From assembly GCA_965112735.1 (NCBI GenBank), contig OZ218951.1, forward strand, positions 4,836,001-4,900,000: a DNA stretch of 64,000 nt, in the 5' to 3' direction. Numbering within the stretch: position 1 is the first letter of the stretch; every line of letters begins with the position of its first letter. The position numbers and the translations under genes were made by a program. Origin of the DNA: Phaeosaccion multiseriatum. Its lineage: Eukaryota > Protista > Ochrophyta, other classes. The notes below the pieces were generated by a model. That model saw nothing but the letters and a program-made list of their open reading frames with translations, was not told the origin of the DNA and did no database searches. This document shows, in pieces, positions 2,567 to 51,457 of the stretch.

Positions 2567-3741
2567 CAGGAGGAGGAGCAAGAGGAGGAACAAGCGGAAG
2601 AGGAGTAGGAAGAGGAGGACGAGGAGGAGGAGGAGGAGGAGGAGGAGGAGGAGGAGGACGAGGAGGAGGAGGAGGAGGAGGAGGAGGAGGAGGAGGAGGA
2701 GGAGGAGGAGGAGGAGGAGGAGGAGGAGGAGGAGGAGGAGGAGGAGGAGGAGGAGGAGGAGGAGGAGGAGGAGGAGGAGGAGGAGGAGGAGGAGGAGGAG
2801 GAGGAGGAGGAGGAGGAGGAGGAGGAGGAGGAGGAGGAGGAGGAGGAGGAGGAGGAGGAGGAGGAGGAGGAGGAGGAGGAGGAGGAGGAGGAGGAGGAGG
2901 AGGAGGAGGAGGAGGAGGAGGAGGAGGAGGAGGAGGAGGAGGAGGAGGAGGAGGAGGAGGAGGAGGAGGAGGAGGAGGAGGAGGAGGAGGAGGAGGAGGA
3001 GGAGGAGGAGGAGGAGGAGGAGGAGGAGGAGGAGGAGGAGGAGGAGGAGGAGGAGGAGGAGGAGGAGGAGGAGGAGGAGGAGGAGGAGGAGGAGGAGGAG
3101 GAGGAGGAGGAGGAGGAGGAGGAGGAGGAGGAGGAGGAGGAGGAGGAGGAGGAGGAGGAGGAGGAGGAGGAGGAGGAGGAGGAGGAGGAGGAGGAGGAGG
3201 AGGAGGAGGAGGAGGAGGAGGAGGAGGAGGAGGAGGAGGAGGAGGAGGAGGAGGAGGAGGAGGAGGAGGAGGAGGAGGAGGAGGAGGAGGAGGAGGAGGA
3301 GGAGGAGGAGGAGGAGGAGGAGGAGGAGGAGGAGGAGGAGGAGGAGGAGGAGGAGGAGGAGGAGGAGGAGGAGGAGGAGGAGGAGGAGGAGGAGGAGGAG
3401 GAGGAGGAGGAGGAGGAGGAGGAGGAGGAGGAGGAGGAGGAGGAGGAGGAGGAGGAGGAGGAGGAGGAGGAGGAGGAGGAGGAGGAGGAGGAGGAGGAGG
3501 AGGAGGAGGAGGAGGAGGAGGAGGAGGAGGAGGAGGAGGAGGAGGAGGAGGAGGAGGAGGAGGAGGAGGAGGAGGAGGAGGAGGAGGAGGAGGAGGAGGA
3601 GGAGGAGGAGGAGGAGGAGGAGGAGGAGGAGGAGGAGGAGGAGGAGGAGGAGGAGGAGGAGGAGGAGGAGGAGGAGGAGGAGGAGGAGGAGGAGGAGGAG
3701 GAGGAGGAGGAGGAGGAGGAGGAGGAGGAGGAGGAGGAGGA
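2567..3741. repeat. (GAG/GGA)n trinucleotide tract, uninterrupted from 2660 to 3741
   Basis: Direct reading; source of the spurious poly-Ser and poly-Pro ORFs. Confidence 0.95.
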
Positions 3742-4743
3742 CAGGGGACGAGGCGGGCGGGGCAGATAAACGTGGAACCCATACTCACTCACCCACTCAC
3801 CCACTCAACCACTCAACCACTCCCCCACTCACTCACTCACCCACTCACCCACCTATTCACTTTCTAGCTCTATTCTATGTACGAAGTTCAGAGAGCATGA
3901 ATGCAGTATATACACACTTCTCCAAGGTCGAGAGGCAAGCAGCAAGATTCACAGATGGAAATATTTGCGGCACTCCGTATCTAGTGCCTCCCCGCCACTC
4001 TCTTCCGTCCGCTGGGAAGCAGGGCTCACCCGTACGCTTCTATCTGATCCCCACTTGATATTGCCGAGGGCAGGGCTGTCTTTGACGAGGGGCTAAGTAG
4101 AGACCAAAAAGTAGCAGAGCACTGAGAAAGGCACTCAGTACTAGCTTATCTCGTTGGTTTACGTAATCTTTAGTAATAGCATAGTGTTTCATAAGCCACT
4201 GAGTACGCGTTGACTCGATTGGGCGGAACTTGCCTTTTGTCTCCGCACGAGCACAAGCCCCGCCTAGGACCTGGCGTTCACCTTTTATCATTGTGTGTTT
4301 AGCAGGCAGTACTTTCTCTAAGCTACGACTACTTGCTGTGCCCGCATGCCCCACTAAGGAAGCCCTCGTCCTCGATCCGTCGGGATTGCACTCTCTCCCC
4401 TCCACATGAGCTCACCTTCCCTCTCCCTCCTCCCTCAAGCTATGCACTTATTCACCCATTGATCCCGTAAGCTACACACATGACTCCCCTACCCCCCCCC
4501 GGACCCCCTTCCTCATATACTCCGCTCCTCTCTGCGACAGAGGATCGCAATCACTTCATCCCTCCTATACCAAGCCAGTGTGCCATGGGCAGTCTCTCCC
4601 TCGCATCGCATCCTGATGTACAGGCCCACTCGCATGGGCTGCATGACTGGTGCAAGCGAGCGAGCTGGAACGATACTCTTTCGTTGTCAAAGTCGTCGTT
4701 GCCCTACCAGCCCCCACCTCGCCCATCCCTCCTGGCTGCTCGC

Positions 4744-6247
4744 TCAGCCCATCTCCTCCGCCATGCTCTCCCACGTCTCGCTCCCCACACTCCAGGGCCT
4801 CTCCAGCGGCAGGATTCCGCTCTCCTTGCCGAAGGTCGGATCCGTCCTTCGCATGAGGTCCAGCGCGGTTTGGGACCGGAAGAAGGCTGTTGCCGCCTCC
4901 ATAAGTCGCTGCTCGATGTCGAGGCCGAGCTGACACCGCCGTGCCCCAGCCAAGGCCTTGTCCACCGAAGCACCGGCCGAGAGGAGCTGCCGCGCAGTCC
5001 CGTGCTGGTGTCTGATGATGGCAGCAAGGAGTGGGGTGGCACTGTGTGATTCCGTGATATCGATGAGGGATCCCGCAGAGATGAGACGAGCGACGACGGC
5101 CTCGTGTCCACAATGCGCGGCAAGGTAGAGAGATGTTGTGCCGTTGTTGGCCCATTTGTCCACACGCGCTCCCGCAGAGAGAAGCTTCTCCACCACGGCG
5201 TCGTGTCCCTCTTGAGAGGCAAGGTGAAGAGGAGTGAAACCTTCGAGGTCAGCCTTGTCGACGTTGGCGTGGGCCCTGATGAGCTGCTGTACAATTCCCG
5301 CATGCCCTTTAACAGATGCCTGATGAAGCGGAGTTCTCCCTTGATTACTTGCGTTGTTGACATCCGCTTGGGCTGAGATGAGGTGCCTTACAATAGAGCT
5401 GTGTCCGTTCTGAGAGGCAACCCAAATCGCAGAGATACCCCGCTTATCGGCCAAGTCGACAATAGCACGCGCCGAGAGCAGCTGCTGCACAGTCGTGGAG
5501 TGCCCCCTTTCCGACGCTACCATCAAGGGAGTAGCTCCTGTGGCGTCCGCCTGGTCGACAGGGGCTCCAATGTCCAACAGCCGCCTCACCACCTGATCCT
5601 GTCCATAGCTGCTAGCCGTCATCAACGGCGTGTATCCAAAGGGGCCCCCTCTGGTGCTGAAGGAGGCCTCTTCCCGCAGCAGCAGGTCTAAGACATCCAG
5701 CCGATCGTGCAGTATAGCCTCAAGCATTGCGGTACTTCCTTCTTCTTCGATGGGCTGATCCAAGCTTGCTCTGCCATGTTTGGCGATGAGCTTCCCAATC
5801 AACGCTTTCACAGTGGGGAAGCTGACTCCTCCCTTCAGAGCCTGCCCCAGCCGCTCCGCCTGGTGTTGTTGAGGGAAACGAGTTCGGGGGGGACAGACGC
5901 ACACACGTACATAGGATGAAAGGGATCAACAGGAAGCTGCTCGCTGCTTCGATACGTGAACATCCCACCGCCGCCCATCGTATCCGCAAAGCCCCCCCTC
6001 GCTTTGCTCTCCCCGAAACACAGAGTCCATCTTAGTGTACTGTGTGAGAAGCGGGGGAGAGGCGCAAACGCCGGGGAAAAAAGGGATCAATAGAGAGCTT
6101 CCCTCTGCGTCGACACGTGAGAACCCACCGCAGCTATCGTATCCGCACAAGAACCCCTCTCTCTTTGCTTCATTCTTTCCGAAGGACACCGTCTTACAGG
6201 AGGACGCTAGGTCGTACCTCGGGCGTTAAAGTTGCCTGCTCCGCCAT
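4744..6247 (-). CDS. Ankyrin-repeat protein ANK1 (8 repeats + conserved C-terminal tail); exons 6247-6218, 5859-4744
   Basis: Eight GxTPL..A...GH..VV..LL..GA repeats; exon 1 MAEQATLTPE|gtacga joins in phase 0 to caccag|AERLGQAL; same structure in all four copies and in the 42-43 kb paralogue. Confidence 0.9.
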
Positions 6248-6445
6248 GGTGAGCAAGCGGCTTCACGATTGATAGGGTAATGCTCACAAGGAGCCTACAG
6301 AAGGCTCTCTCGCTGCTGTGCAGTAGTCGGTGGCTCTGCCTATCACCGTCCCCCCCGCTCTCTGAAAAGTTTTGAAACTATGGAGGCCTCTGAAGCATAC
6401 TTTATTGACTTAATAGGAATCACCTAAGAAACTGAAAGTGTGAAA

Positions 6446-6476
<31 letters not shown>

Positions 6477-6522
6477 TGTGTGTGTAGGTGTCGCTGTGTC
6501 TCCGGGGCCCTCGAGGGGCCGG

Positions 6523-9500
6523 TTACTCCCCCTCTAGGGCGGGGAGGGGGAGTGCGGGACCGGCTCCGCGGTTGAGCCGACCCAGGAAGGCGCGCTCCCG
6601 CTCCGAGAGCCACATCTGGTGGCTGCAGCTGACGAGGCGGCGTAGTCGTGTCAGGACGTGGCCCTTGGTGGTGGAGGAGCCCGTGCGGCCAGTGCGGGTG
6701 ACCACGTGCTCGGCGAGTGCGTGCAGGAGCGATTGCGCCTGTGCGCCGAGTCGGCCGTGGGTCTCGATGGCGAAGGTGGAGAGGCGAACACGCTCTCGGT
6801 CGTAGGTGCCCCTGTAATGTCGCTCCTTGCGGGTCTCGCTGTTGGCGGCTGCCGCTCCCGGTCTAATGTCCGTGCGGAGCACATTCAAGGCCGTCCTGCA
6901 GAGGTTGTTACTCAGGGTTAGGTCAAGCATGTGCGCCGGGTGGGCAAAGGTGGGGTCGCGGGCTCCGGAGAGGGCGCCTCGGGGGAGGGTGGCGTCCATG
7001 CGGAAGGTCCGGGCGATGTTGTGCGGGGGGTTGAAGAGCTCCGAGCTCTCGTGTCCGACGCGGGAGACGTAGTTCTGCTTGAACATGTCCTCGACGGAGG
7101 AGAGCATCCCGGTGTGATAGAGCGAGCTCTGGTTGGGGCACTGGATGGCGTGGGAGGAGTCGGCGCGTGTGTTGCAGCGGGTGCAGACTAGTGCGTCGGG
7201 TTCCCCAGGGCTGTACAGACAGTTGATGCCGAGGGAGCGTCGTAGGGCCCCTACCATGTCTTGGGCCGGCATGGAGACCTGTCCAGGTGAGGTGGCGATG
7301 AAGCCCATGGCCCCGTCGCTGCTCTGGCTCAGGTGCCGAGACTTGGCCTGTCGGCGAGACTCCATGCCGGTATCGGCAGCAGCGGCGTCGTCGGGGAGTC
7401 GGTCCAGTGAGGCGCGGTACTTGTCCCGGCGTTGCGGCGCTAGGCATCTCTGCAGGGCGCGCTGCGTCTGCTGCTGCGGGGCCCAGGTGCCCTGGGCGAG
7501 GCTGGTGTCGAAGGCGTCCTCAGCTCGTTGGCGGTCCGCTGCTGAGGTGAGCGCGAGGTTGACCAGGGGGAGGGGGAGATTCATCTCCAGGTCTTGTCGG
7601 GAGAGGGTCCCGTCTTCGGCGGCGGCCTGGATGGTGGTAACGATGTTTTGGACCGTGCTACTCTGGCGGAGGGCTGGGGCGAGGTCGCGTAGGTCCGCCT
7701 CTGGCCAGATGGCTCCCGGTGTGATCACTGACTGGAGGGTGTCGGCGGCTGCGCCCAGGTAGGCTGGTATGGCGGTGTTGGTGAGGGAGAGGGAGCCCCA
7801 ACCTCCTTGGGACTGGGGAAGGAACATCTGTTGGTGCTGGTGTGAGGCGAGCTGAAGGTGCGACAGTCGGTCCGAGGGTGCGCTGGCGATGATGTCTCCG
7901 ATGGTGTCCGCTCCTGGGAGTTGGAGTAGGGCCTCTCCGACGGCGAGGCTGAGGGCGTCGCCGGGGGAGGCAATGGTGTTGATCGTCTGGCCGGGGGCGG
8001 CACCGCGCAGATAGTGCTGGAGTTTTGGCGAGAGTGACTTCGTGAGCAGGAGGAGGGCGGGTTGTGTCTCCGGCATGAGGGCGATCTGCTCGGCGAGGTT
8101 TAGGAAGGCGTGTCTGTCGGGTCCGTCCACCATGAGTTGGGAGAGGTAACCTCTGATGAAGTCGTCTTGGCCGACTGGGAGGCCGACAATGCTCAAGCCG
8201 CCGTCCTCGATGATGGTGCCGCCGGTGCGGTCCACGAAGGCGCGCTCTTCCATGGTGACGTGGTGGCCCGGGGGGGGGAGGTATCGTTGCTTGTCCGTGC
8301 GGCGGGTGAGGCCGATGGAGGCGAGGTCGGTGGTGAAGGTGTCGAGAGTGGGCTCGAAGTCGGCGAGGTTGCCGCGCCAGGGGTGGACGAAGTCGTCCTG
8401 GTAGGCCCGGGGTGCGGGGATGCCCTCCTCACGGGCCTCGTTGGTCCACTTCTGTTGGAGGGGGTAGAGTGCGCAGCAGAAGTTCTTGCTGGCCTCGGGG
8501 TCGCCTTGTCCGCCGCTGCCGCGGTTGGTGCGTAGCAGCTGGTTGCCGTCGTCAGACAGGTAGATGAGGTCGCGGTCCTTCCCAAGGGCGGCGATGTTGT
8601 GCTCGATGCCACGGGGGTCGACGAGGGCGGTTCCCGTGAGCGTGGCCGCGGTTGTGACTTCGTTATGGGCGTTGCGGAGGTCGCTGGTAGCGACCCAGTA
8701 GCCCATGTCGTGGAGCAGTTGGGCGGATTTGGCGACTTTCTCCGTGCCGTTCTTTGTCGCGACGCCAAGCTGGCCGACGCTCTCGAATGCCTCCTGGTAG
8801 GCGGGCTTGTAGTGGATGCCGTGGGTGGAGTGAAAGAGGCGGGTGAGCGTCTCCTTTACGGCGATGGGGCGTCGTTTCTCGCCGAGAGCGTCGAGGCAGG
8901 CATGGGTGAAGAGGCCGTGGAAGTACTCCGGGAGTTTGCCCAGGGACTCGTGGGCAAGGGGGAACTCGTTGACGAGGAGGAGGAGGAGGTCGGTGCCGTG
9001 GGCGGGGTCTTGAAGCATGTCCTTCAGGTGGGAGTAGCGGAGGCCTGAGGGGCCTGGTCCCGAGTGCCAGTTGGCGTTGATGAGTGCCTGCCGGATGACT
9101 CTGCGGTGGTCGGCGTTGTTGGGCTTAGTGTAGCGGCCGGGGTGTGCGGCGATGGTCCGTTGTGCGGTGGCGCGTGCGGAGGTGATGACCTCTTGTAGGG
9201 TTTCCGGGGCTGGCTCGCGTGGGTGCTTGGCGGCGAGGATGTCGAAGGTGGCCTGGTTGCGGGGGGGTTGATGCTCTGTCGAGGAGAGCGCGCTGGCTGC
9301 CTTGCTGATGCCTCCGGGTCGTGCGGTGAGTCCGGCAGCCCACGATCGTTTGGCTGCATCCGAGCGCACGGGGTCTTGTCGGGGGCGGCGGGCTTGGGCG
9401 TTTGCAATGAGCCTGCGAACGTGCTCCTCAATGACGAGGTTGTGGACGTCGTTGGCCATTTGGGCGCGTGAGTACTTGGGGGCGTGGCCGAGGATGAGGG

Positions 9501-9740
9501 CGGGGAGGAGTTGCCGAAAGTTGAGCCAGGCCCGAGCGGTGTTCCATGCGTCCTCTGGGGCAGCCGGTTCCAGGGCGGCGCGGATGGAGGTGATGAGTTG
9601 CCGGCCGATGTGGAGGTAGAAGGTGGCGAAGTGGAGGTTCTTGTGGAGGTGTTTGACAGTGGGGAAGACGAGTCCTTTGAGGTCGTATTGTGCCAATCCT
9701 TGGATCGTTGGGTGGTCCGAGGTCCAGTGTGGGAGGGGTA
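6523..9740 (-). CDS. Reverse transcriptase - zinc knuckle - restriction-like endonuclease portion of family A polyprotein
   Basis: SGPGPSG, RRPIAV, DLRNAHN, GQGDP, AYQDD, IVGLPVG, LPQSQGGWG; CTRC..HAIQC; RMD...LDLT...KERHY...FAIETHG. Confidence 0.9.
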
Positions 9741-10676
9741 GGGGGGGGGGGGGCCGGCGCCGGGGTCCGGCGCGGGGTCCCTTGCGTCCTCACCAGGAGG
9801 TGGCGCCGGTCCACCTCCTGCGCCGGGTAGCTGTCGTCGGTGGTGGTCGATGACGCCGGTGGTGATGGCGTCCAGTTCCCGTGCGAGTTGGGCGTGCTGT
9901 TCCGGTGTGATGGCGTGGGTGGCGAGCTGGTTGGCGTAGTGGGTCCTGATGTTGTCGACGGTGATGAGCGGCGGGAAGCGAGTGGGGCAGGGCTCGTTTC
10001 CGGCGCGTTGTTCAAGGATGCTGATGCAGTGGAGTCGGCCGTGGGCGTCAAGGTGAAGGTCTTGCAGGGCGGGGGTGGCCACCCTGTCGGCCATGCTGCC
10101 CGCCTGACAGCGGGGGTGGAAGCTGTGGCCGCAGGGGTAGGAGATCGCCTCTCCTGCGGGGATGGCTTCGGCGCAGATGTGGCAGATCTGGCGTGCCGGG
10201 TCGCGCGGGGGGCCGGGTGGTGGGGCCGCAAGGCGGTTGGTAAGGCGGTTGGCCAGGCGTGTAGCGGTGTCCTCCGGGAGGCGGGAGATGAGGGCCTCGT
10301 GGGTTTCCGAGCTGCGGCAGTAGGCGCAATCGGAGCTGGTGGGGAAGTGCGGTGGATCCGTGGCGTTGTGGAAGATGGCGTCGGAGATGCAGTCCGCGTG
10401 GGCTGGATGGGGGTGCTGTGCGCAAGCGTGGAAGGGAGCGGTGGGCGCGCTGTTGAGTGGCTCTAGGCAGTACAGGCAGCGGTCCTGGCCTTCGTCCTCA
10501 GGGGGGTCTTGGTCGTCGTTGTCGTCCGGGTCCTCATGGGGTGGGGTTCCGGGGGGGCTACCGGGGGGCGAGGCGGGGGGGCTGGGGGGTGGGCTGGCTG
10601 ACGGCCCTCCTGGGGGGGGTCCTCCCCCTGGCCCATGGGGGGGGGAGGGTGGGGGGCTGTCCGTGGGGTCGTTGCG
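9741..10676 (-). CDS. N-terminal part of family A polyprotein with Pro-rich region and two RING-type zinc fingers, separated from the RT frame by a -1 shift in a C13 run
   Basis: CLYC...CAQHPHPAHADC...CAYC and CHIC...CGHSFHPRC...; the RT frame is open back to G13 at 9741-9753 (LPLPHWTSDHPTIQGLAQYDL). Confidence 0.75.
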
Positions 10677-11344
10677 TCTGAAGCAGGCATTGGGTTTGGT
10701 GATCCGATTCACAGATCCCGATCCAAGGAGGGCGGAGTTCCTTGTTTGGGTGAAAGGCAGCGGCAGCAAGGCCGTGTTGAGTTTAAGTGCGCACAGACGC
10801 AACAGCGCCGCTGCTGCCTAGATGAGCGGTGCCTTCCTTCCGCCTCCACACGAGCACAACGACCTGGCGTTCACCTTTACAATTGTGTGTTTATTTAGCA
10901 GGGTAGTGCTCTTCTCTAAGCTGCGACTACTTGCTGTGCCCGCATGCCCCACTAAGGAAGCCCTCGTCCTCGATCCGTCGGGATTGCACTCTCTCCCCTC
11001 CACATGAGCTCACCTTCCCTCTCCCTCCTCCCTCAAGCTATGCACTTATTCACCCATTGATCCCGTAAGCTACACACATGACTCCCCTACCCCCCCCCGG
11101 ATCCCCTTCCTCATATACTCCGCTCCTCTCTGCGACAGAGGATCGCAACCACTTCATCGCTCCTGCACCAGACCAGTGTACCATGGGCAGTCCCTCTCTC
11201 GCATCGCATCCTGATGTACAGGCTCACCACTCGCATGGGCTGCATGACTGGTGCAAGCGAGCGAGCTGGAGCGGTACTCTTTCGTTGTCAAAGTCGTCGC
11301 TGCCCTACCAGCCCCCACCTCGCCCATCCCGCCTGACTGCTCGC

Positions 11345-12831
11345 TCAGCCCATCTCCTCCGCCATGCTCTCCCACGTCTCGCTCCCCACACTCCAGGGCC
11401 TCTCCAGCGGCAGGATTCCGCTCTCCTTGCCGAAGGTCGGATCCGTCCTTCGCATGAGGTCCAGCGCGGTTTGGGACCGGAAGAAGGCTGTTGCCGCATC
11501 CATCAGTCGCTGCTCGATGCCGAGGCCGAGCTGACACCGCCGTGCCCCAGCCAAGGCCTTGTCCACCGAAGCACCGGCCGAGAGGAGCTGCCGCGCAGTC
11601 CCGTGGTGGTCTTCGCAGATGGCACCAAGGAGAGGGGTGGTACCGTCTGTTGCCGTGACATCGATGGGGGATCCCGCAGGGATGAGACGAGCGACGATGG
11701 CCTCGTGCCCACCCTCCGCGGCAAGGTGGAGGGGTGAAGCGCCCTTACTGGTTTTCATGTGCACACGTGCTCCCGCAGAGAGAAGCTTCTGCACCACGCC
11801 GTCGTGTCCCTCTTGAGAGGCAAGGTGAAGAGGAGTGAAACCTTCGAGGTCAGCCTTGTCGATGCTGGCGTGGGCCCTGATGAGCTGCTGTACGATGCCT
11901 GCATGCCCTTCAACAGATGCCTGATGAAGCGGAGTTCTCCCTTGATTACTTGCGTGGTTCACATCCGCTTGGGCTGAGATGAGGTGCCTTACAATAGAGC
12001 TGTGTCCGTTCTGAGAGGCGATCCAAATCGCAGAGATACCCCGCTTATCGGCCAAGTCGACAATAGCACGCGCCGAGAGCAGCTGCTGCACAGTCGTGGA
12101 GTGCCCCCTTTCCGACGCTACCATCAAGGGAGTAGCTCCTGCTGTGGCGTCCGCCTGGTCGACAGGGGCTCCAATGTCCAACAGCCGCCTCACCACCTGA
12201 TCGTGTCCGCAGCTGCTAGCCGCTATCAACGGCGTGCCTCCAAAGGGTCCCCCTCTGGTGCTGAAGGAGGCTCCTTCCCGCAGGAGAAGGTCTAAGACAT
12301 CCAGCCGATCGTGCAGTATAGCCTCAAGCATTGCGGTACATCCTTCTTCGTCGATGGGCTGATCCAAGCTTGCTTTGCCATGCTTGGCGATGAGCGTCCC
12401 AATCAGCGCGTTCACGGTGGGGAAGCTGGCTCCTTTCTTCAGAGCCTGCCCCAGCCGCCCCGCCTGGTGTTGTTGAGGGAAACGAGTTCGGGGGGGACAG
12501 ACGCACACACGTACATAGGATGAAAGGGATCAACAGGAAGCTGCTCGCTGCTTCGAAACGTGAGCATCCCACCGCCGCCCATCGTATCCGCAAAAGCCCC
12601 CCCTCGCTTTCCATCTTAGTGTACTGTGTGAGAAGCGGGGGAGAGGCGCAAACTCCGGGGAAAAAAGGGATCAATAGAGAGCTGCCCTCTGCGTCGACAC
12701 GTGAGAACCCACCGCAGCTATCGTATCCGCACAAGAACCCCTCTCTCTTTGCTTCATTCTTTCCGAAGGACACCGTCTTACAGGAGGACGCTAGGTCGTA
12801 CCTCGGGCGATAAAGTTGCCTGCTCCGCCAT
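11345..12831 (-). CDS. Ankyrin-repeat protein ANK2; exons 12831-12802, 12463-11345
   Basis: Intact paralogue of ANK1 with the same splice sites and a one-codon insertion (DATAG). Confidence 0.9.
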
Positions 12832-12922
12832 GGTATGAGCAAGCGGCTTCACGATTGAGACGGTATTGCTCACAAGGGGCCTACGGAAGGCTCTCTCGCT
12901 GCTGTGCAGTAGTCAGTGGCTC

Positions 12923-12989
12923 GTAATTATGAGAGAATTTTTTTTTTTTTTTTTTTTTATAGGAATGACCTAAGGAACTGAAAGTGTGA

Positions 12990-13033
<44 letters not shown>

Positions 13034-13126
13034 GTGTCGCTGAGTCGTCGGGGCCCTCGAGGGGCCGGTTACTCCCCCTCTAGGGCGGGGAGGGGGAGTG
13101 CAGGACCGGCTCCGCGGTTGTGCCGA
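12923..13126 (-). mobile_element. 3'-end fragment (~200 bp) of family A retrotransposon with poly(A) tail, inserted with ~93-bp target deletion
   Basis: Matches 6413-6579 with several substitutions; T-run at ~12938-12958; CCGA microhomology at the 5' junction; host sequence between GGCTC and CCGATCC is missing. Confidence 0.88.
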
Positions 13127-13144
13127 TCCAAGGAGGGCGGAGTT

Positions 13145-13484
13145 TTGAGAGAGAACCAAAAAAAAACACGACCTCATTTGGTCTCTTATAGGATGGAACA
13201 GCAAGGTTTTTGTCCTTCAGCTCAGGTGCTTTCAAAACACTCGCCACCCAAGAACACCTGAACATGAGGGCTGCCTTATGGACGAGCTGTTTGTGTCATT
13301 CGAAGGCGCTTGGCTGTGGCGCTCCAGCGGGCCCGCCATGAGAGATCGATTCGCCACCGGGTTCTGGCCGGTATCAACTTTGTTCCGATGGAGAGGACTG
13401 ACGAGTCGGAGGTAGACGACCTCTGGGAACTTAGTTTTAGTTCCCAGGGGGCTTTCTGGAGTGTATACTAAAAGTAAATATAAA
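13145..13484 (+). mobile_element. Degraded 3'-end fragment of family B retrotransposon in opposite orientation; possible AGTT TSD
   Basis: Translates to ..EQQG..PSAQ..RAVCVIRRRLAVALQRARHERSIRHRVLAGINFVPMERTDESE, near-identical to the C-terminus of ORF 16045-17361; AGTT at 13141-13144 and 13485-13488. Confidence 0.85.
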
Positions 13485-13912
13485 AGTTCGTTTGGGTGAA
13501 AGGCAGCGGCAGCAAGGCCGTGTTGAGTGCGCACAGACGCGACCGCGCCGCTGCTGCCTAGATGGGCGGTGCCTTCCTTCCGCCTCCACACGAACACAAC
13601 GACCTGGCGTTCACCTTTACCATTGTGTGTTTAACCAGGAACAGTTTTCTCTTATCCTACGACTACTTGCTGTGTCCGCATGCCCCATCAAGGAAGCCCT
13701 CGGCCTCGACCCATCGGGACTACACTCTCCCCCCTTCAAACGAACTGACTTTCTCTCTCCCCCCTCCCTCAAGCTATGCACTTCTTCGCCCATTGATCCC
13801 GTAAGCTACACACATGACTCCCCTCCCCCCCCGGACCCCCTTCCTCCTGTACTCCGCCCCTCTCTGCGACAGAGCATCGCAATCACTTCATCGCTCCTAC
13901 ACCAAGCCAGTG

Positions 13913-14165
13913 TCGGCCCCCCGCGGGGCTTCTCGGGCTCCGGGCTTCTAGGCCATAGCCCCCTCCAGGCTTCGGGCTTCTGGCCGCAGGCCAGAGGTCT
14001 GGGCTTCGGGCTTCTCAGGCTGGGGAAAAAAATGGGAGACTTGGGCTTCTCGCTACTTTCCTGCAGGCTTCTGGCCGCAGGCCAGCCCCGGGCTTCTTAC
14101 TTTCGGCCGCAGGCCGCCTCAGACTTCTGCTTATCGGGGGGCCCGAGAAGCCCGCGGGGGGGCGA
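13913..14165. mobile_element. MITE (253 bp) with ~25-bp TIRs TCG(G/C)CCCCCCGCGGG(G)CTTCTCGGGC and 4-bp TSD AGTG
   Basis: Absent from the other three units (empty site CCAGTGTGCC in unit 1); internal GGGCTTC repeats. Confidence 0.9.
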
Positions 14166-14336
14166 AGTGTGCCACGGGCAGTCCCTCTCTCGCATCGCAT
14201 CCTGATGTACAGGCTCTCCACTCGCATGGGCTGCATGACTGGTGCAAGCGAGCGAGCTGGAGCGGTACTCTTTCGTTGCCAAAGTCGTCGTTGCCCCTAC
14301 CAGCCCCCACCTCCCGCATCCCTCCTGGCTGCTCGC

Positions 14337-15839
14337 TCAGCCCATCTCCTCCGCCATGCTCTCCCACGTCTCGCTCCCCACACTCCAGGGCCTCTCCAGC
14401 GGCAGGATTCCGCTCTCCTTGCCGAAGGTCGGATCCGTCCTTCGCATGAGGTCCAGCGCGGTTTGGGACCGGAAGAAGGCTGCTGCCGCATCCATCAGTC
14501 GCTGCTCGAAATCCCGGCTGAGCTGCCACCGCCGTGCCACAGCCAAGGCCTTGTCCACCGAAGCACCGGCCGAGAGGAGCTGCCGCGCAGTCCCGTGGTG
14601 GTATCCGCAGATGGCAGCAAGGAGAGGGGTGGCTCCGCTTGATGCCGTGACATCGATGGGGGATCCCAAAGAGATGAGACGAGCGACGACGGCCTCGTGC
14701 CCATTCTGCGCGGCAAGGTGGAGAGGTGTTGAGCCCTTGTTGGTCCTTTTGTCCACATGTGCTCCCGCAGAGAGGAGCTTCCCCACCACAGCGTCGTGCC
14801 CTTCCTGACAGGCAAGGTGAAGAGGAGTGAAACAGTGGAGGCTAGCCTTGTCGATGCTGGCGTGGGCCCTGATGAGCTGCTGTACGATGCCCGCATGCCC
14901 TTTGAGCGATGCCTCCCGAAGCGGAGTTCTCCCTTGATTATCTGCGTGGTTCACATCCGCTTGGGCTGAGATGAGGTGCCTTACAACAGAGCTGTGTCCG
15001 TTCTGAGAGGCAAGCCATATCGCAGATAAACCCTGCTCGTCCGCCAAGTCGACATTAGCACACGCTGAGAGCAGCTGCTGCACTGTTGTGGAGTGCCCCT
15101 GTTCCGATGCCGCAATCAAGGGAGTACCTCCTGTGGTTTCCGCTTGGTCGACAGGGGCTCCCATGTCCAACAGCCGCCTCACCACCTGATCGTATCCGTA
15201 GCCGCTAGCCGCTATCAATGGCGTGTATCCAAAGGGTCCCCCTCTGGTGCTGAAGGAGGCCCCTTCCCGCAACAGAAGGTCCACAACATCCAGCCGATTG
15301 TGCCGTATAGCCTCAAGCATTGCGGTACATCCTTCTTCGTCGATGGGCTGATCCAAGCTTGCTTTGCCATGCTTGGCGATGAGCTTCCCAATCAGCGCTT
15401 TCACAGTGGGGAAGCTGTCTCCTCTCTTCAGAGCCTGCCCCAGCCGCCCCGCCTGGTTTTGTTGAGGGAAACGAGTTCGGGGGGGAGGGAAGCACGCACG
15501 TACATAGGATAATAGGGATCAGCAGGAAGCTGCTCACTGCTTCGATACGCCAGCATTCCACCGCCGCCATCCTATCCGCAAAGCCCCCCCCTCGCTTTGC
15601 TCTCCCCGAAACACAGAGTCCATCTTAGTGTACTGTCTGAGAAGCGGGGGAGAGGCGCAAACTCCGGGGAAAAAAGGGATCAATAGAGAGCTGTCCTCTG
15701 CGTCGACACGTGAGCTTCCCACCGCAGCTATCGTATCCGCACAAGAACCCCTCTCTTCGCTCCATTCTTTCCGAAGAACACCGTCCTACAGGAGGGCGCT
15801 GGGTCGTACCTCGGGCGTTAAAGTTCCCTGCTGCGCCAT
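14337..15839 (-). CDS. Ankyrin-repeat protein ANK3; exons 15839-15810, 15452-14337
   Basis: Intact paralogue with the same splice sites and reading frame. Confidence 0.9.
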
Positions 15840-15985
15840 GGTGAGCAAGCGGCCTTGCGCTTGAGACGGTAATGCTGACAAGGGGCCTACAGAAGGCTCT
15901 CTCGCTGCTGTGCAGTAGTCGGTGGCTCTGCCTATCATCGTCCCTCCCGGTCTCTGAAAAGGATATCCTGAAAAGTTCTGAAACT

Positions 15986-18726
15986 TACACCCTTAAGTGC
16001 CATCTATGGTTGTCTAAAAGTAATGTCTCACCGCCCCGGGGAACTTAGCCCTCGAGGTCGTGTCCCTCTGACTCATCAGTTCTCCCCATTGGAACAAAGT
16101 TGATACCAGCCAGGATCCTGTGTCGAACCGATCGTTCGTGTCGGGCCCGCTGGAGCGCTACGGCTAATCGCCGCCGAATGACGCAAACAGCTCTCGCATA
16201 AGCCTCCATGTCCAGATGTTCGTGCCCCCCAGCCATGTGGGTGGCAAGTGTTTTCATAAACGTCTGAGCAGAAGGACCAAATGCGCCTTGCTGTTCTATT
16301 GCGAAAGGGACGAGGTGGTACCTCGTGGGGTCATAGTGGATATCCCCACCCTGGCCTTCCATGCCTACCTGTGGCACCCCATACCTGGTCCGCTTAGTTG
16401 CTTCAGCCTTCTTGGCTGCCGCGAGTGCCTCCTTCGATGCCTTGGCCCGATTGGTGATGTTGGTGGCATCTGTGAGCGTGACATCAATCATAAGTGATTT
16501 GTGGCCGTCCCCATATTCGTGGTCGGATGGAAGCTCAAACATCCTAGGGGGGGTCACGATGTCCATCTCCATCTGCTTAGCCACGTGGGCGTCACCCCTC
16601 ACGGCGTTGCTCCCCCCTCTCCCTCGTCGTGGGGTGACCGTTCTTTCCCTCATGAAGAAGGGGAAGCCGGTGTTCTGCACTATCCCTCTGCCCAGGCCCT
16701 CAGTCTTCATCAAGGCGACAAGTGCCTTCTGCACAGCGTCATGTTGGGGTGTGCCGAGCCCCGTCTTTGTGCAGATGATTATGTGCCCCTCCGTCAGCGC
16801 CTTGCCAGGACACTTGTGGCAGTCCTTGCTGTATGTGGGATCGAAGCCTAGCCGGCTCCGGATGGCACCCTTATGCTCGGGAGGCGTGAGGTGGAGTGCA
16901 CCCCCTGCCGTTTTGGTGGGTCGGAGATGAAGCCACGCACCAGCCCCCTTCACGCTGTGACTGAGGGCTCTGGCCAGGCCCTTCTCCCGTGCATCCTGCT
17001 GTGGGATCAGTTTCAGGTGTTCCAGATAGTCTGTCCTCGCCTTCGACGTGAGGAGCTTGGTGAGACGCTTCTGGGCACCTCGCCTAGCCCCGTGGCGGCT
17101 CTGTGGGATGGAGGGTCCGCCCCCATCCAACATCTTGGTTTCCTCTGTCCGCCAGCGTATCTGGTCCACTACATCCTCGTCAACCTCTCCTGGTGCCACG
17201 TCGTGCTCACCACCCCCTGGGTCTTCGTCTCTCCCACCCCCTGGGTCTTCGTCACTCCCGCCCCCTGGGTCCGCCTCGCTGTCGGAGGTTGGCCCGTCTA
17301 CGGGCCCCTCCTGCATTGCCGCTGCGTCGCACCCCTCCGCCCCCCCCCTAGGTTGGACCACGTCGTCGCCCCCAAGTCTGCTCCCTCATCCCCAGACTGT
17401 GTGTCGCCCCCCCCGGGGGTCACACCCGCGGCCGGCTGGTCTCCTCGGCGACCCTCTGGTCTGTGCACTTCATGCGCTGGGGTCTCCTCTCTCTCCGGGA
17501 AGAGCTTGGTGATCAGCCATGGCTCACTCCATCTGTTGTCGCTGAGGTGGGGAATGATTGACGCCGCGCTGTACAGGGATGCTGTGATTACCCATGGCGG
17601 GAGGTCACAGTATGTGGGTCCAAGCGCATCTCGCAGCAAGCCTCCCCCCGTGGGGAGGAGCAGGGCCTCCGGTCTGCTGATGTGGCCGTGGGCAAGCAAC
17701 ACAGCCCATCCTTTCGGGAGGGACTTGAGGAAGCGCTCCTGTTGGCTGAGAGCACCTTCGGCCGCGTCTGCCTTGGGCGTGCTGGGGAGTTGGTCGTGGA
17801 TACGAGCTGCTGCTTGTATCACACGGATATGGTAGCCGTTGGGACCCTGTCCACGCTGTGACAGGGCCTGCCTGCTCCGCGGTCCCACCTCTCTGAGGGC
17901 GAAGGGGAGGGCTTGCATCGCCCCTGCAAGGAAGGCTGCGTCACAGAGTTCGGCTTGGGGGACGAGTCCCAGACCTCCATCGCCCACCTTCAGCCTCGCC
18001 TGTCTCGCTCTCAGCTCATCACCTATGAGGGGGAGCATCCGGAAGGTGTCCCTGCCCCCCTGCAGCACCCTCTCCTCTTGCGCTGCTCTGTGTACCTCTA
18101 GCTAGTATCGCCGTTACTGAGGTGCGCCCTGGATCCAGAGAGTTGGTTGCTGCATACCCCACGAGAGTGTCAAAGAGGGTGAGGGTGTGTCGAATGAGGT
18201 CCGGCGGGGTTACCCTCATCAGGAAGTTGGCCTTGGGAATCATCGACCTGGCTGCCAGGTACATCGAGCTGGAAGAGTCGTCCATGCGCCCAGCGAGCTC
18301 GCAGAGCTGGGGCATCACGCTGGTGGTGCCTAGCTGCTCATCGATGTATTGTTCCACAAAAGCTTGCGTGCCAACTGGCGCTCCAACCACTACAGCCCCT
18401 CAGTTGCCATTCGGGTGATGTATCCAGTGCCCCCCTTCGCCCCCTCCGTCTTCTCGAGCCATGTCCTCTCTTGTGGCGACAGCACCCTCCCCTTCCCCAG
18501 TAGCACGACACACTTGGTGGGGTTGAGGGAGAGGCTGACCTCAGCCAGCCTGCGGGCCATGAACTCCTGGCTCACTAGGTTTGCGCGGTGATAGAGCGGC
18601 TCCCCGCATGCCCCACTCACTCTCATGCCATCTAGGTAGGCGGTGGCTCGTACTCCAGTGCCCTGCATGAGATTATTGTGATCACGCAGGATGGGCAGGA
18701 GGAGGGCGGCGTACATAAGCGCGCCT
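15986..18726 (-). mobile_element. Non-LTR retrotransposon, RLE (CRE-like) type, family B; 5'-truncated within RT and frameshifted; 5-bp TSD AAACT
   Basis: AAACT at 15981-15985 and 18727-18731 (empty site 6375-6379); AYLDG (degenerate YxDD), VVGAPVG, LKVGDGGLG, CHKC..HIIIC, MEMD...IDVT...FAIEQQG spread over four ORF segments. Confidence 0.88.
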
Positions 18727-19403
18727 AAACTATGGAGGCCTCTGAAGCAGGCATTGGGTTTGGTGATCCGATTCACAGATCCCGATCCAAGGAGGGCGGA
18801 GTTCCTTTGTTTGGGTAAAAGGCAGCGGCAGCAAGGCCGTGTTGAGTTTAAGCGCGCACAGACGCGACCGCGCCGCTGCTGCCTAGATGCGCGGTGCCTT
18901 CCTTCCGCCTCCACACGAGCACAACGAACTGTCGTTCACCTTTACCATTGTGTATTTGGCAGGGCAGTACCCTTGCTTCTCTAAGCTACGACTTCTTGCT
19001 GTGCCCGCATGCCCCACCAAGGAAGCCCTCGGCCTCGATCCGTCGGGATTGCACTCTTCCCTCTCCACATGAGCTCACCTTCCCTCTCCCTCCTCCCTCA
19101 AGCTATGCACTTCTTCGCCCATTGATCCCGTAAGCTACACACGTGACTCCCCTCCCCCCCGGACCCTATACCTCCTGTACTCCGCCCCTCTCTGCGACAG
19201 AGGATCGCAATCACTTCATCCCTCCTATACCAAGCCAGTCTGCCATGGGCAGTCTCTCCCTCGCATCGCATCCTGATGTACAGGCTCACTCGCATGGGCT
19301 GCATGCCTGGTGCAAGCGAGCGAGCTGGAGCAGTACTCTTTCGTTGCCGAAGTCGTCGCTGCCCTACCAGCCCCCACCTCGCCCATCCCTCCTGGCTGCT
19401 CGC

Positions 19404-20907
19404 TCAGCCCATCTCCTCCGCCATGCTCTCCCACGTCTCGCTCCCCACACTCCAGGGCCTCTCCAGCGGCAGGATTCCGCTTTCCTTGCCGAAGGTCGGA
19501 TCCGTCCTTCGCATGAGGTCCAGCGCGGTTTGGGACCGGAAGAAGGCTGTTGCCGCATCCATAAGTCGCTGCTCGATGTCCCAGCCGAGCTGCCACCACC
19601 GTGCCCCAGCCAAGGCCTTGTCCACCGAAGCACCGGCCGAGAGGAGCTGCCGCGCAGTCCCGTGGTGGTCTCCGCAGATGGCAGCAAGGAGAGGGGTGGT
19701 ACCGTTTGTTGCCGTGACATCGATGGGGGATCCCGCAGAGATGAGACGAACGACGACGGCCTCGTGCCCACCCTCCGCGGCGAGGTCGAGAGGTGTTGCG
19801 CCATTGTTGGCCCGTTTGTCCACACGTGCTCCCGCAGAGAGAAGCTTCTCCACCACGGCGTCGTGTCCCTCTTGAGAGGCAAGGTGAAGAGGAGTGAAAC
19901 CTTCGAGGTCAGCCTTGTCGATGCTGGCGTGGGCCCTGATGAGCTGCTGTACGATGCCTGCATGACCATAATGCGATGCCTGATGAAGCGGAGTAGTCCC
20001 GCGATTATCTGCGTTGTTCACATCCGCTTGGGCTGAGATGAGGTGCCTTACAATAGAGCTGTGTCCGTTCTGAGAGGCCATCCAAATCGCAGAGATACCC
20101 CGCTTATCGGCCAAGTCGACAATAGCACGCGCCGAGAGCAGCTGCTGCACTATCGTGGAGTGCCCCTGTTCCGATGCCGAACTCAAGGGAGTAATTCCTG
20201 TGGCATCCGCTTGGTCGACAGGGGCCCCAATATCCAACAGCCGCCTCACCACCTGATCGTGTCCAACGCGGCTAGTCGCTATCAACGGCGTGCTTCCAAA
20301 GCGCCCCCCTCTGGTGCTGAAGGAGCCCCCTTCCCGCAACAGAAGGTCTAAGACATCCAGCCGATCGTGCACTGCAGCCCTAAACACTGCGGTACATCCT
20401 TCGTCGTCGATGGGCTGATCCAAGCTTGCTTTGCCGTGCTTGGCGATGAGCTTCCCAATCAGCGCTTTCACCGTGGGGAAGCTGTCTTCTCTGACCAGGG
20501 CCTTTTCGAGTCGCCGCGCCTGGTGTTGTTGAGGGCAACGAAGTGGGGAAGGAGAGACGCACGCACGTACATAGGATGAAAGGGATCAGCAGGAAGCTGC
20601 TCACTGCTTCGATACGCCAACATCCCACCGCCGCCATCCTATCCGCAAAGCCCCCCCTCGCTTTGCTCTCCCCGAAACACAGAGTCCATCTTGGTATACT
20701 GTCTTGGGAAGCGGGGGAGAGGCGCAAACGCCGGGGAAAAAGGGATCAATAGAGCGCTGCCCTCTGCGTCGACACGTGAGCTTCCCACCGCAGCTATCGT
20801 ATCCGCACACAAGAACCCCTCTCTTTGCTCCATTCTTTCCGAAGAACACCGTCGTAGAGGAGGGCGCTAGGTCGTACCTCGGGCGTTATAGCTGCCTGCT
20901 GCGCCAT
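19404..20907 (-). CDS. Ankyrin-repeat protein ANK4; exons 20907-20878, 20519-19404
   Basis: Intact paralogue; outermost copy, head-to-head with the gene at 21265. Confidence 0.9.
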
Positions 20908-21264
20908 GGTGAGCAAGCGGTTCCGCCCTTGAGACGAGCAGTGCTGACAAGGGGCCTACAGAAGGCTCTCTCGCTGCTGTGCCTGCTGTGCAGTAGTCAG
21001 TCGCCCTGCCTGTCACGGCCCTCCCGTTTTTTGGTTGTTGGAGGCCTCTGAAGGCATCGGGGGGCTTGATGCTCCAGAGTCACAGATCCCGATCTTTAGA
21101 AGGAGACCCCTCAGCTTCTCAACCTTGAAAGAGAAGGATACAATCGTGGAGCATAGAGCACTGATGGCGTAGGAAGCACACGCAACACGCAGCCAAGGAC
21201 GTGTAGGGGCTACGCGACACACGATCAGAAAGATCGCAGTCAGTTCAGCAGGGCAACGGCAAGA

Positions 21265-23871
21265 ATGGTCAAGCGCAAGCAGGAACAGCAGCACACATCC
21301 CAGGCCCCGCCTTTGGAGCCCATTCGTGCAGCTGCTGCCGCGACGGCGGCTCCTACTGCTGCTCCTGCCACTTCTTCTCCATCCGGGCTATTGCAGGGCG
21401 TGATGGGCTCATCCGCTGCGCCACGTTTCTCCTCCGGTCCACCCAGCTTTTCCCATGAGTCTCAAAAGGTAAGGAAAGGCTACGCAAGGTACTGCGTCCT
21501 TTGCTCCCGCCCTACACTTGCTGGGGGCTGGTAATTCCCCTCCTCGCATTATGTCCGCTTCTACCCGCGGTCCTTACCGGCCAATCCCTCTGCCTTTTCC
21601 CCCCAAATCTCCGCAGCTCGTCACTTCCGCCTCTTTTGCTGGGGGTGGGAAGATGCAGGCCTTCATGTCTCCCATCCACGCGGCTTCACGGCCAAGCCTC
21701 AATCGGACTCCCATGAGCGCCCCGGCTCCTCATCCGGCAGGGGGTGAAGGGGCTATCGCCCGCAATGGAAGACGCCTTTGTGAAGACTACCAAGAGACTG
21801 TGCCCCTCCTCCGCACTAGTCCCGTTCGCACCACGACTCCCGAAGTCTTGATGCCGCTGGGAACATCCGAGAATGACGAGGGAGAAGGAGGAGTCCATAG
21901 AGGATGCGGGACACAGAAAAAGGGCTCTGGGGCAGCAGTAGCACCCACTGGAGGAGAAGTAGTAGGGGGGGGCGGAGGAGCAGGAGCTCCAGCAACATCT
22001 GCGGCAGCACCAGCAGGAGGAGCAGCAGGAGGAGAAGGAGAAGGAGAAGCAGGAGCAGGAGCCGCTGCTGTACGGACTCCTCTCCCTTCCGCGAGGCCGG
22101 CGGAGCCCTTCACCTTCTCCCCCATTCTCCTGCAGGGCCTGGGCATCAGCACTCCCTCCCCCGGCACGGCTTTACTCTTCCAGCAGCCGTGGACCGATTC
22201 CGAGGGCCTGGCCCCGTGGAGCACCACGAATGCTGAGGTGAGTGGTGGCGAGTGCGTGGGAGGTGCGTGAGCGAGCCAAGTTGTGAGCCCCCTGTTTTCG
22301 GCTAGCTACAGCCTCCCCTCCTCTTTGGGAGAGCTCCACTCGCCTGCTCCCTCCCCTCCCGACTCTTCGTTACTAACCTCGTGTCTCGCCCCCTCCCCTC
22401 CTCACCCCTCCCTCACTCACTGGCCCCTCCCCGGTATTCGGCAGGCACCAACTGGCCAGCAGCAGCAGCAGCAGGAGGAGAAGGAGGAGGAGGAGGAGGA
22501 ACAGACCCACCACCCAGCCATGACCATGATACGCGATGGCCACCCCAACCGCAGCGACAGCCACCGCCCCTTCCGATCCTCCACGTCTCCCGCGGAGAAC
22601 GAAGCCGCTAATGCGCTGGTGGCCATCGGGAGTCCTCTTCCACCCGCTCGCCACCTCCGCCTGCACCACCAGGGTCAGGGTCAAGAAGGTGAATCATCTT
22701 CTTCTTCGGACACGCATGTAAGAATGTCGAGTCTCTCTCCCTCTCTCTCTCGCTCCACATCACTAGCTATACACTTCTACACACCCGTACACACGACACG
22801 CCCACACGCACGCACATCGTCGCCTGCCTCTCGAGACGCACTGCTCCATCAGAACTTTTGCTTCGCTTCTTATGACACTACTCCATCACAACTTTTGCTT
22901 CGCTTCGCTTCATGAATGCCCAGGGGGGACTCAGAGGAGTTGCTCACTCGACTCTTCAGCCCACGCGGAAGGCCAATCTGCCTCCTCTAGCGAGCCCCGC
23001 AGCCCAATCCCTGCAGAGCTCCACCACGCCTCGTCGCTCTACTCGCCGCACGACGGCTTCCAGCAGAACGGACGGGGGGCTAAGGAGCGGGCACCACCAT
23101 CAGCAGCAGCAGCAGAAGTCAGAGCAGGGCTTTGCCGTAGGAGTGGGGGAGCACGAGATCACAATCAAGCTTCGTATCCGCCCCTCCGCTGCCCATCCGA
23201 GGCCAGGAGGCTCCGTGGTGCCTTCTTCCTCTTCACAGTCGATGGTGGTGGATGGTGGGGACGTTGACGACAGATACGAAGGAGCGAGGCTGGGGGCGAA
23301 CAGGGTTTTCTTTGACTGCGTCGCGGATTACCATGGAACGGGAGCCATGAGCGCACGGGCGGAGGACGCGACATACACCCATTGGCAAGGGGGGTCACGA
23401 CTGGGCGAGGGGTGGGGTGAAGATTCCTTCTCCTCGGAGTCGGCTGCGACCAAGCGGAAGCAGGAGGAGCAGGATGAGAAGGAGGAGGAAGAGTGGCAGC
23501 CGCAAGGCGTGCAGAAGAAGAAGCGGGGGCCTGGGCGGCCGCGGAAGGTGGGTGGAACGACGAGCGGGCAGCAGCAGACCAAGACGGGCCGACCTCGCAA
23601 GGCGGCTAGAGGGAGAGTGTGGTCGTCTTCCCAGCAGTCGCGGGGCCCCGGGGGGAGGTTCGGAAAGAAGGTCGACGACAGCGGCGGTCGCAAGCCTGCT
23701 GGAGCAAATACGACTGCACAATCGAGCGGAGGGGGGGCAGTCGCGGCAGCGGGCATTGGGGAGCCTCATGAGGCAGAGGAGGTAGTCGGCACCGACCCCC
23801 CAGCCACGGCGCCTGCCGCCCTTGACAGCGACCCGCCGCCAGCCTCAGCAAGTGTGAGCGGGTGTAGCTAG
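21265..23871 (+). CDS. Low-complexity putative nuclear protein with AT-hook motifs; exons 21265-21468, 21617-22237, 22445-22717, 22924-23871
   Basis: All joins are phase 0 and link consecutive ORFs; KKKRGPGRPRK and TGRPRK motifs. Confidence 0.7.
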
Positions 23872-50646: not shown

Positions 50647-51457
50647 CAAATCGAGTGTTAAAATACGTAATTGATGGTACTAGTATAAAATATAAAACTT
50701 GGACTTGTAAGGAGTGGTCGACATGGTATGATCTCTGGTACAGCTACCCCCCCCCCCCCTGCCTGGAGCTAAGGGGCATCACCCTAACCTTGCGCCCGCA
50801 CCTACGGTCGTACACACGGTTCACCAACCGCGCTACCAATCACCCACAATCATCCTTCCTCAGCAGATCAGCGCCACCCAAGCACAGTCACCCACATCTA
50901 CACTGCTTGTCCCACACTGGCGCAAACCCCTTTCCCTCCCAAACTACAACCGCCATTGCTGCTGACCCCCATCGGCACCCCCATCGGCGGAATCAGACCC
51001 CAGGGCCCATACGTAATCAGCACCCCAGCCCCTACCATCCTCTGTGCTTCTGACGGATTGCTGCAGACACAGCTTCCTCCTGCGTACTCATTTTACTTCC
51101 CTTCCTGTCTAAGCCGTCTATTCCTCAGCTCGTTTTGTTTTGAAAGAAGCATCCGCTCCTCCTCCGGTTTAACCCCCGCCCCCCTCCACCCCATCTCTAC
51201 ACGAGTGACGGGGAAACCAAGCCCCGTTACCTTGACCCCTGCCCTCCGTCCAGCCCCCCTCAGTTACTTCCTCCCTTCCTTCCTATCCTGCCACCGCTGT
51301 ATCACTCGTTGCTGCGGCGGCTGCTGCTGTCGACCCTCTATGGCGAGCATGGAGCCCACCGCCTTCGTCCCCCCCCCCTCAAAAGCCTCCTCATCCCTCC
51401 ATCTATCCCATCCTTGCTGCCTCGCCATCTGTGATTCACTTGTACAGGTAGATGGAT

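Follow-up and report, generated by a model that had tools for sequence, protein, structure and literature searches.

Tandem ankyrin genes of Phaeosaccion multiseriatum as a probable integration hot spot for two R2-type retrotransposon families

A 64-kb stretch of the genome of the ochrophyte Phaeosaccion multiseriatum (C2:4836001-4900000, hereafter the window; genome of 67 Mb in 22 contigs) carries a tandem array of four ankyrin genes, the three internal spacers of which contain sequence of two related families of retrotransposons without long terminal repeats (non-LTR), here named A and B. The array is probably an integration hot spot for these two recently active R2-type families, and not a functional system in which ankyrin genes and retroelements act together. 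Throughout the genome, the 5' ends of A and B are preferentially found 14-89 bp away from CGCCATCTGTGA(G/A), a dispersed word.

Insertions in the spacers of the ankyrin array

Sequence of the A or B family was found in all three internal spacers (S1, S2, and S3), within ~120 bp of the same upstream site, which we call the landing pad. This bears out the claim made in an earlier reading of this DNA from its letters alone (the sequence-only reading) that retrotransposon sequence occupies the same place in each internal spacer. The pre-insertion sequence was taken from an inverted sister array that lies 30 kb away (C2:4802873-4810426), whose unit junctions E1 and E2 are empty and in which neither A nor B is present. 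The genes, insertions, and pads are as follows, in window coordinates.

4744-5904, minus strand: ankyrin gene 1, an open frame of 386 codons with 7 ANK repeats and a conserved C-terminal tail
6389-6397, minus strand: downstream copy of the target-site duplication of A (9 bp, TGCTTCAGA), single in the empty sites E1 and E2 of the sister array
6399-10676, minus strand: element A in spacer S1, a full-length R2-type non-LTR retrotransposon of 4.28 kb with RING-like fingers, reverse transcriptase (RT), CCHC knuckle, and restriction-like endonuclease (RLE)
10677-10685, minus strand: upstream copy of the 9-bp target-site duplication of A
10698-10718, minus strand: landing-pad word GGATCTGTGA followed by ATCGGATCACC, first base 42 bp from the 5' junction of A
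11345-12508, minus strand: ankyrin gene 2, 387 codons
~12927-13139, minus strand: older A-related 3' fragment in spacer S2
~13249-13490, plus strand: B-related fragment in spacer S2, inverted, with its truncated 5' end toward the word position
14337-15404, minus strand: ankyrin gene 3, 355 codons
15962-18729, minus strand: element B in spacer S3, a 5'-truncated and frameshifted copy of the second RLE family, 2.77 kb
18762-18782, minus strand: the same landing-pad word upstream of B, first base 57 bp from the 5' junction of B
19404-20471, minus strand: ankyrin gene 4, 355 codons
21041-21094, minus strand: landing pad upstream of gene 4, with GGATCTGTGA at 21080-21089; the site is empty

The B element in S3 has its 3' end at 15985 and a short GTTT duplication at its junctions, and comparison with the empty sister-array site places its junction ~20 bp further on than that of A. 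In S2, the two fragments (span 12923-13499) stand in place of ~120 bp of the pad region; positions 12956-13139 of the A-related fragment are 93% identical to A and are followed by a 21-nt poly(A), and this fragment is associated with the loss of ~90 bp of the landing pad, word included. When a profile hidden Markov model (HMM) of the family was run over the 64 kb, it detected the S2 fragment, A, and B in four frame pieces, but no further sequence of the family elsewhere in the window; the sequence-only reading had recognised no non-LTR element in the other ~47 kb. Scans of the whole window with Rfam (gathering threshold) and for tRNA genes gave no match, and the pad is thus not a known RNA gene.

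A further occupied pad was found in an ankyrin array of contig 15, where a shorter B fragment lies 5-6 bp from the position of B and has a different truncation point. This fragment is 89% identical to the B element of the window, the surrounding units being 82-83% alike, and subsequent duplication of its unit has copied it six times. The insertions, which are unlike one another in family, age, orientation, junction, and site of 5' truncation, were counted as independent and amount to at least four separate events in the three internal spacers and one more in the contig-15 array. That the A insertion is a separate event is also shown by its 99% identity to distant copies, compared with ~90% between the units, and by the empty sites E1 and E2. 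Uniform insertion predicts ~0.02 hits in the ~39 paralogous 120-bp sites that were examined, whereas at least five events counted as independent were seen (P ~3e-11). The co-occurrence of ankyrin genes and retroelements to which the sequence-only reading had drawn attention is, therefore, non-random.

A comparison of C2:4802356-4810426 with window positions 4268-21500 revealed that the two arrays are convergent, their outer flanks being 97% identical and their units 87-90% identical. The array and the sister array are a large palindromic duplication with faster-diverging genes.

Recognisable 3' ends in the 67-Mb genome numbered 123 for A and 169 for B, and 18 other copies of A and 20 other copies of B were examined. 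All 18 A copies end at the same base and vary in their 5' truncation, and the same was observed for the 20 B copies; target-site duplications of ~8-16 bp were found at many sites of both families, at target sequences that are unrelated to each other. The insertions were judged to be ordinary products of target-primed reverse transcription (TPRT) because of these exact 3' ends, the 5' truncation, and the target-site duplications, and the data show that A and B insert in this way at numerous genomic locations that are unrelated to one another. Ankyrin-unit flanks were seen at none of the other 38 copies, and the two families, which insert in non-coding DNA, are not confined to a single gene family. 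The ankyrin unit did not behave as a fixed target either, the junctions within the ankyrin pads being scattered over ~120 bp. As for the capture of retroelement DNA during break repair, its hallmarks were not found, since the A element of S1 and the B element of S3 have exact canonical 3' ends and duplications; the sole atypical junction was that of the older A fragment of S2, with its poly(A) and 90-bp target deletion.

Neighbouring insertions are common in these families outside the ankyrin arrays too and are read as a re-use of sites. Tandem tails a few tens of bp apart were found at sites L034, L036, L045, L053, and L054, and the 3' ends of A and B lie 95-124 bp apart at C13:2099510/2099605 and C3:3882879/3883003. 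The tandem tails are very short 3'-tail copies (30-70 bp) tens of bp from a copy of the same family, and the same was seen at C1:6062150/6062189 and C11:1191440/1191462, with further short-tail pairs at C13:2958560/2958597 and C16:2216713/2216792. Such short tails may have come from a pad that was hit more than once, or reverse transcription may have generated them as a by-product.

A dispersed word on the 5' side of the insertions

The sequences around 35 independent A/B sites, all of them fixed copies, were analyzed for shared words. The 80 bp upstream of the 5' junctions were examined de novo, and their most enriched 6-mers are all overlapping parts of CGCCATCTGTGA(G/A); CTGTGA was present at 15/35 sites upstream versus 0/35 downstream. 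When up to two mismatches were allowed, 21/35 sites had the word within 150 bp upstream versus 3/35 downstream; with up to one mismatch the values were 12/35 and 0/35, for a background of ~2% per 150 bp (binomial P ~4e-12). In 20 of these 21 sites, the first base of the word lies 14-89 bp from the 5' junction, the remaining site having it at -111 bp, and the word, which may be in either orientation, is always on the 5' side of the element in those 21 sites. Taken together, the 35 sites display the characteristic distance and orientation of a position-specific (tethered) retrotransposon with a mode of action like that of TRE5-A or Ty3.

Every ankyrin unit carries GGATCTGTGA followed by ATCGGATCACC ~510 bp upstream of the coding frame. 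GGATCTGTGA is a 2-mismatch variant of the 10-mer consensus, the shared 8-mer being ATCTGTGA. The word stands at -42 from the 5' junction of A, at -57 from that of B, and at about -47 in the contig-15 copy, and the inverted fragment of S2 is located beyond the word, which its 5' end faces. The 3' tail of B itself contains, on the opposite strand, GCCATCTATGG, which nearly repeats the word. It was also observed that the landing pad at 10698-10717 holds ATCACCAA, which resembles the core of TTGGTGATA (reverse complement), and that the full CTGTATCACCAACT lies upstream of the B site L046.

The word is strongly over-represented in the genome, as the exact 11-mer GCCATCTGTGA occurs 906 times versus 9 times for a reversed control, and the flanks of 20 random copies of GCCATCTGTGA are unrelated to each other. 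Among 17 independent random word sites, one (L064) is accompanied at ~27 bp by a short A-like tail, oriented as expected; this tail contains an indel and was recognised by eye, an ungapped scan for A/B tails at random word sites having found none. The GCCATCTGTGA word contains an E-box-like CATCTG, examples in the window being at 3949-3958 (minus strand) and 51425-51434 (plus strand), and the literature, when searched for the word, yielded primers and unrelated matches only. Two other roles for the word were considered and rejected. As a start-codon context (TCACAG-ATG-GC on the reverse strand), it is followed by stops within a few codons at most of the 20 random sites, and as one of the paired terminal repeats of a small element or intron, it lacks an inverted partner within 200 bp at most random sites.

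Identity of A and B and their putative mode of targeting

The A element of the window is 98.9-99.7% identical to copies on other contigs, and a 2-bp insertion (CC at 9752-9753) splits its single frame into two open reading frames (ORFs), 9024-10802 and 6523-9696. An intact copy of A was found at L021 (C1:4580634-4584901), from which the window copy differs by 37 substitutions in addition to the frame-splitting insertion; L021 has one 1383-codon frame that is open from the second base of the element. The first ATG of this frame does not come before codon 194, and the RING-like fingers, detected as sub-threshold hits at residues 165-196, lie upstream of that ATG. This layout suggests non-AUG initiation or a reliance on outside transcription.

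Pfam and PDB phmmer searches with ORF2 of A alone were blank, and the identification of A therefore drew on relatives, profiles, and folds. In a library of 1.8 billion proteins, 355 relatives of A ORF2 were found, and RVT_1 is carried by 18 of 25 aligned relatives. The profile of A ORF2 matches R2 proteins in PDB (E 1e-11), and the RT motifs KxRPIA, DxxNAxN, QGDP, YQDD, and GL..K are present in A. An AlphaFold (AF2) model of A with a predicted local distance difference test (pLDDT) score of 89 has R2 proteins as its best matches (~1100 columns, E 5e-17), and the predicted fold matches R2 and LINE-1 ORF2p at Z 20-22. The C-terminal 228 residues modelled alone (pLDDT 90) match the zinc-knuckle/RLE region of R2, namely residues 1205-1390 of the zebra-finch R2Tg (Z 11.8) and 923-1107 of the silkworm R2Bm (Z 11.4), the next structural matches being PD-(D/E)XK nucleases at Z of 7.2 or lower. 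The CCHC knuckle of A consists of C838, C841, H849, and C853, and D901, D925, and K957 are invariant in 29 relatives. A search of the 1383-residue L021 frame for an apurinic/apyrimidinic endonuclease (APE) domain gave no Exo_endo_phos hit at E up to 0.1. By profile and fold, A is an RLE-encoding non-LTR retrotransposon of the R2 superfamily, and the label of RLE-clade non-LTR element that had been given to it from the letters was correct.

The B ORF at 16045-17361 (438 codons) is homologous to the C-terminal domain of A (E 1e-9). The B element of the window covers positions 371-1001 of the family HMM, and its 5' truncation lies inside the RT. Its last 120 bp (15985-16104) are 100% identical to at least 12 other copies, whereas identity to the long copies falls to 86-87% over the remainder; the 3' end is common to subfamilies.

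Among the known RLE-encoding clades, in which targeting is common, members of CRE, R2, R4, and NeSL in the main target a single fixed nucleotide within a multicopy RNA gene or a microsatellite, whereas HERO is largely non-specific (PMC4640811). Like the elements of these clades (CRE, R4, NeSL/Utopia, and HERO, together with R2), A has a single ORF in which the RT is followed by a CCHC knuckle and a PD-(D/E)XK RLE and there is no APE, and copies of A and B end at an exact base on the 3' side and are truncated to varying extents on the 5' side; in structure, A is matched best, as shown above, by R2 proteins. Unlike the fixed-site elements CRE, R2, R4, and NeSL, A and B have variable duplications, unrelated targets, a loose distance to the word, and a word in either orientation, and the N terminus of A carries RING-like fingers in place of the zinc-finger/Myb N terminus of R2. 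With a loose spacing to the word and a variable cleavage sequence, A and B fall between the target-specific and the non-specific RLE clades.

In mode of action, the nearest analogue of A and B is TRE5-A of Dictyostelium, an APE-type non-LTR element that is tethered ~50 bp upstream of tRNA genes via TFIIIC/IIIB (PMC3159450); membership of the same group is not claimed. Like TRE5-A, the two families are position-specific, and not sequence-specific, elements of a gene-dense genome that show a set distance, a fixed orientation of the element, and repeated hits at a pad. They differ from it in that their endonuclease is an RLE and not an APE, that the feature near which they land is a 10-13-bp word and not a Pol III gene, and that the tether is putative.

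A mechanism can be proposed in which the nicking complex of the element is positioned by the word or by a protein that binds it. The candidate word binder would be a factor of the host or else the N-terminal zinc fingers of the element itself, in the manner of the contacts that R2 makes with upstream DNA. If the word acts in this manner and the ankyrin gene was duplicated in tandem, the duplication would have multiplied the landing pad. Favoured pads would then be hit repeatedly, which may explain the tandem tails and the A/B neighbours found elsewhere. A more specific proposal, which we put forward tentatively and regard as possible rather than probable, is that A and B would be the first RLE-type long interspersed nuclear elements (LINEs) known to integrate by position and not by sequence, tethered to a putative word-bound factor, and that the word copy in the tail of B seeds new pads. 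The first nick would be made a few tens of bp from the word, with the 5' end of the element toward the word, and a B insertion could, through the word copy in its own tail, create a new pad and attract further hits. Such a seeding of pads would explain both the tandem tails and very hot pads like those of the ankyrin array.

Should word-directed targeting be real, A and B would provide a compact system for the study of how an R2-type element chooses its sites without a single ribosomal RNA position. This is a question of relevance to the ongoing work on retargeting R2 for gene insertion. In addition, a word in strong excess in the genome would gain a function or, failing that, something that binds it. 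For the system proposed by the sequence-only reading, the result is deflationary, as the alternation of binder genes with retroelements calls for no coupling between them.

Counterevidence, alternative explanations, and the ankyrin family

Several observations weigh against a word-directed hot spot. The sample of 35 sites is small, ~40% of the A/B sites lack a recognisable word, and, all copies being fixed, survivorship under selection is not fully separable from a preference at insertion. Matches with two mismatches arise by chance in ~12% of 150-bp windows, and for this reason the role of the word at the ankyrin pads rests on its position and on the shared 8-mer. Moreover, the array of the window is occupied at 3/4 pads, whereas ~30 paralogous pads in other arrays are empty, and the typical occupancy of a word site, roughly estimated at ~0.2-2%, is far below this value. 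The word alone does not account for the local excess, which calls for an additional factor or for chance together with ascertainment.

The lack of a word at a substantial part of the sites would be expected if insertion was approximately random and the surviving copies piled up in the few tolerant intergenic spots of a gene-dense genome, among them the short interval from the 3' end of one ankyrin gene to the promoter of the next. In agreement with such a passive accumulation, nests of transposable elements (TEs) of mixed classes exist, and copies of a miniature inverted-repeat transposable element (MITE) adjoin A or B at three loci. Nevertheless, we regard this explanation as unlikely, because it does not predict the presence of the word on the 5' side (21 versus 3 sites, or 12 versus 0 with up to one mismatch) nor the narrow range of 14-89 bp. 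Tolerance would also not confine the hits to ~120 bp when ~1.1 kb of each 2.3-kb ankyrin unit is non-coding, nor would it leave the paralogous pads of other arrays empty. A different origin for the pattern would be a single ancestral composite insertion that was duplicated with the unit and later remodelled by deletion and gene conversion. The ankyrin units were indeed formed by local tandem duplication with a period of ~2.29 kb, and the B fragment of contig 15 was clearly copied six times with its unit. For the window, this origin is very improbable: A is bounded by a 9-bp duplication of its own, the sequence of which occurs once in the empty sites, and it matches copies on other contigs at 99% identity when the units are ~90% alike, the A and B junctions are ~20 bp apart, S2 holds an inverted fragment, and the closest relatives of the units, those of the sister array, have empty sites. 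That the array or its insertions are a mis-join of repeats is extremely unlikely. Assembly is difficult for repeats of 2-4 kb that are 90-99% identical, and the check was made with short unitigs (Logan unitigs with DNA-like coverage from four runs, most of them from the probable source sample of the assembly). These unitigs, free of differences, span the upstream junction of S2 (13309-13519) and the 3' junction of B (15908-16009) and link the two fragments of S2 (13092-13338), and the assembly consists of 22 contigs for 67 Mb.

A functional coupling of the ankyrin genes and the retroelements was the main proposal of the sequence-only reading, in the form of a homing of the elements to an ankyrin promoter, of breaks that drive gene conversion between the binder genes, or of a TE trap expressed by read-through. 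It can be argued for such a system that 3/4 pads hold four events, far above the prediction from the word, and that another event occurred in the contig-15 array; that the sense insertions share the orientation of the genes; that the A frame, open from the start of the element, may depend on outside transcription; and that the binders do vary at contact positions. We consider it very unlikely, as no ankyrin unit contains any of the 38 other copies, diversification took place in the insertion-free sister array and contig-9 arrays, and one of the insertions is antisense. A comparison of 38 other copies and ~39 paralogous pads, along the lines of the check that had been suggested, gave more hits at the pads than uniform insertion predicts, no ankyrin unit around any of the 38 copies, and ~30 empty pads. 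Of the promoter safe harbour, the target preference is retained and the ankyrin family as its object is not, the feature shared by the sites being a short word that occurs at least 906 times in the genome. The second model, a recurrent break site that traps cDNA and drives shuffling, finds no support and is contradicted by the canonical TPRT junctions and by the diversification of a sister array whose sites are empty; nor was a gradient of identity between units toward the spacers seen, in what is a weak test. As to the third model, a TE trap expressed by read-through, nothing observed calls for it.

The integration hot spot that we favour leaves the diversity of the ankyrin genes as a subject of its own. 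All four ORFs match Pfam Ank/Ank_2 (E 1e-45 to 1e-62), and the proteins are 82-87% identical to each other. Their variation is concentrated at repeat positions 1, 2, 3, 5, 9, 10, 13, and 14; at the contact positions in the beta turn and first helix that are randomised in designed ankyrin repeat proteins (DARPins), 26/42 columns are variable versus 42/189 elsewhere (Fisher p = 1.2e-6). The description of four intact genes varying at binding positions was hence right as to the variation, whereas "intact" applies to open frames only, an upstream ATG being absent from the long frame in two of the four ORFs. The tandem units are ~90% identical, with start-to-start spacings of 6601, 2992, and 5067 bp, and the unit belongs to a large family with at least 90 matches in the genome and arrays on contigs 15, 9, 2, 7, and 1. 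In its variation at the positions randomised in designed ankyrin binders and in its tandem arrays on several contigs, the family resembles ankyrin-only families with variable binding faces (DARPin-like natural repertoires); no tie was found here between ankyrin diversification and retroelements. We infer that the diversification is a property of the gene family, independent of the retroelements.

A further insertion in the array is not a retroelement.

13913-14165, no strand assigned: MITE-like insertion of 253 bp with terminal inverted repeats of ~30 bp, in the 3' flank of gene 3

At least 197 candidate copies of this MITE were found in the genome, the best of them 96-97% identical, and copies lie directly beside A or B at C13:2099269-2099510, C5:1529706-1529959, and C1:6330542-6330719. 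Just beyond the edge of the array, a microsatellite tract of ~1.4 kb (2392-3804) was observed, two frames of which read poly-Ser or poly-Pro. A longer, 5.5-kb ankyrin repeat is present on contigs 15 and 9, and its equivalent 3.4-kb "gap" also contains a long short-period repeat.

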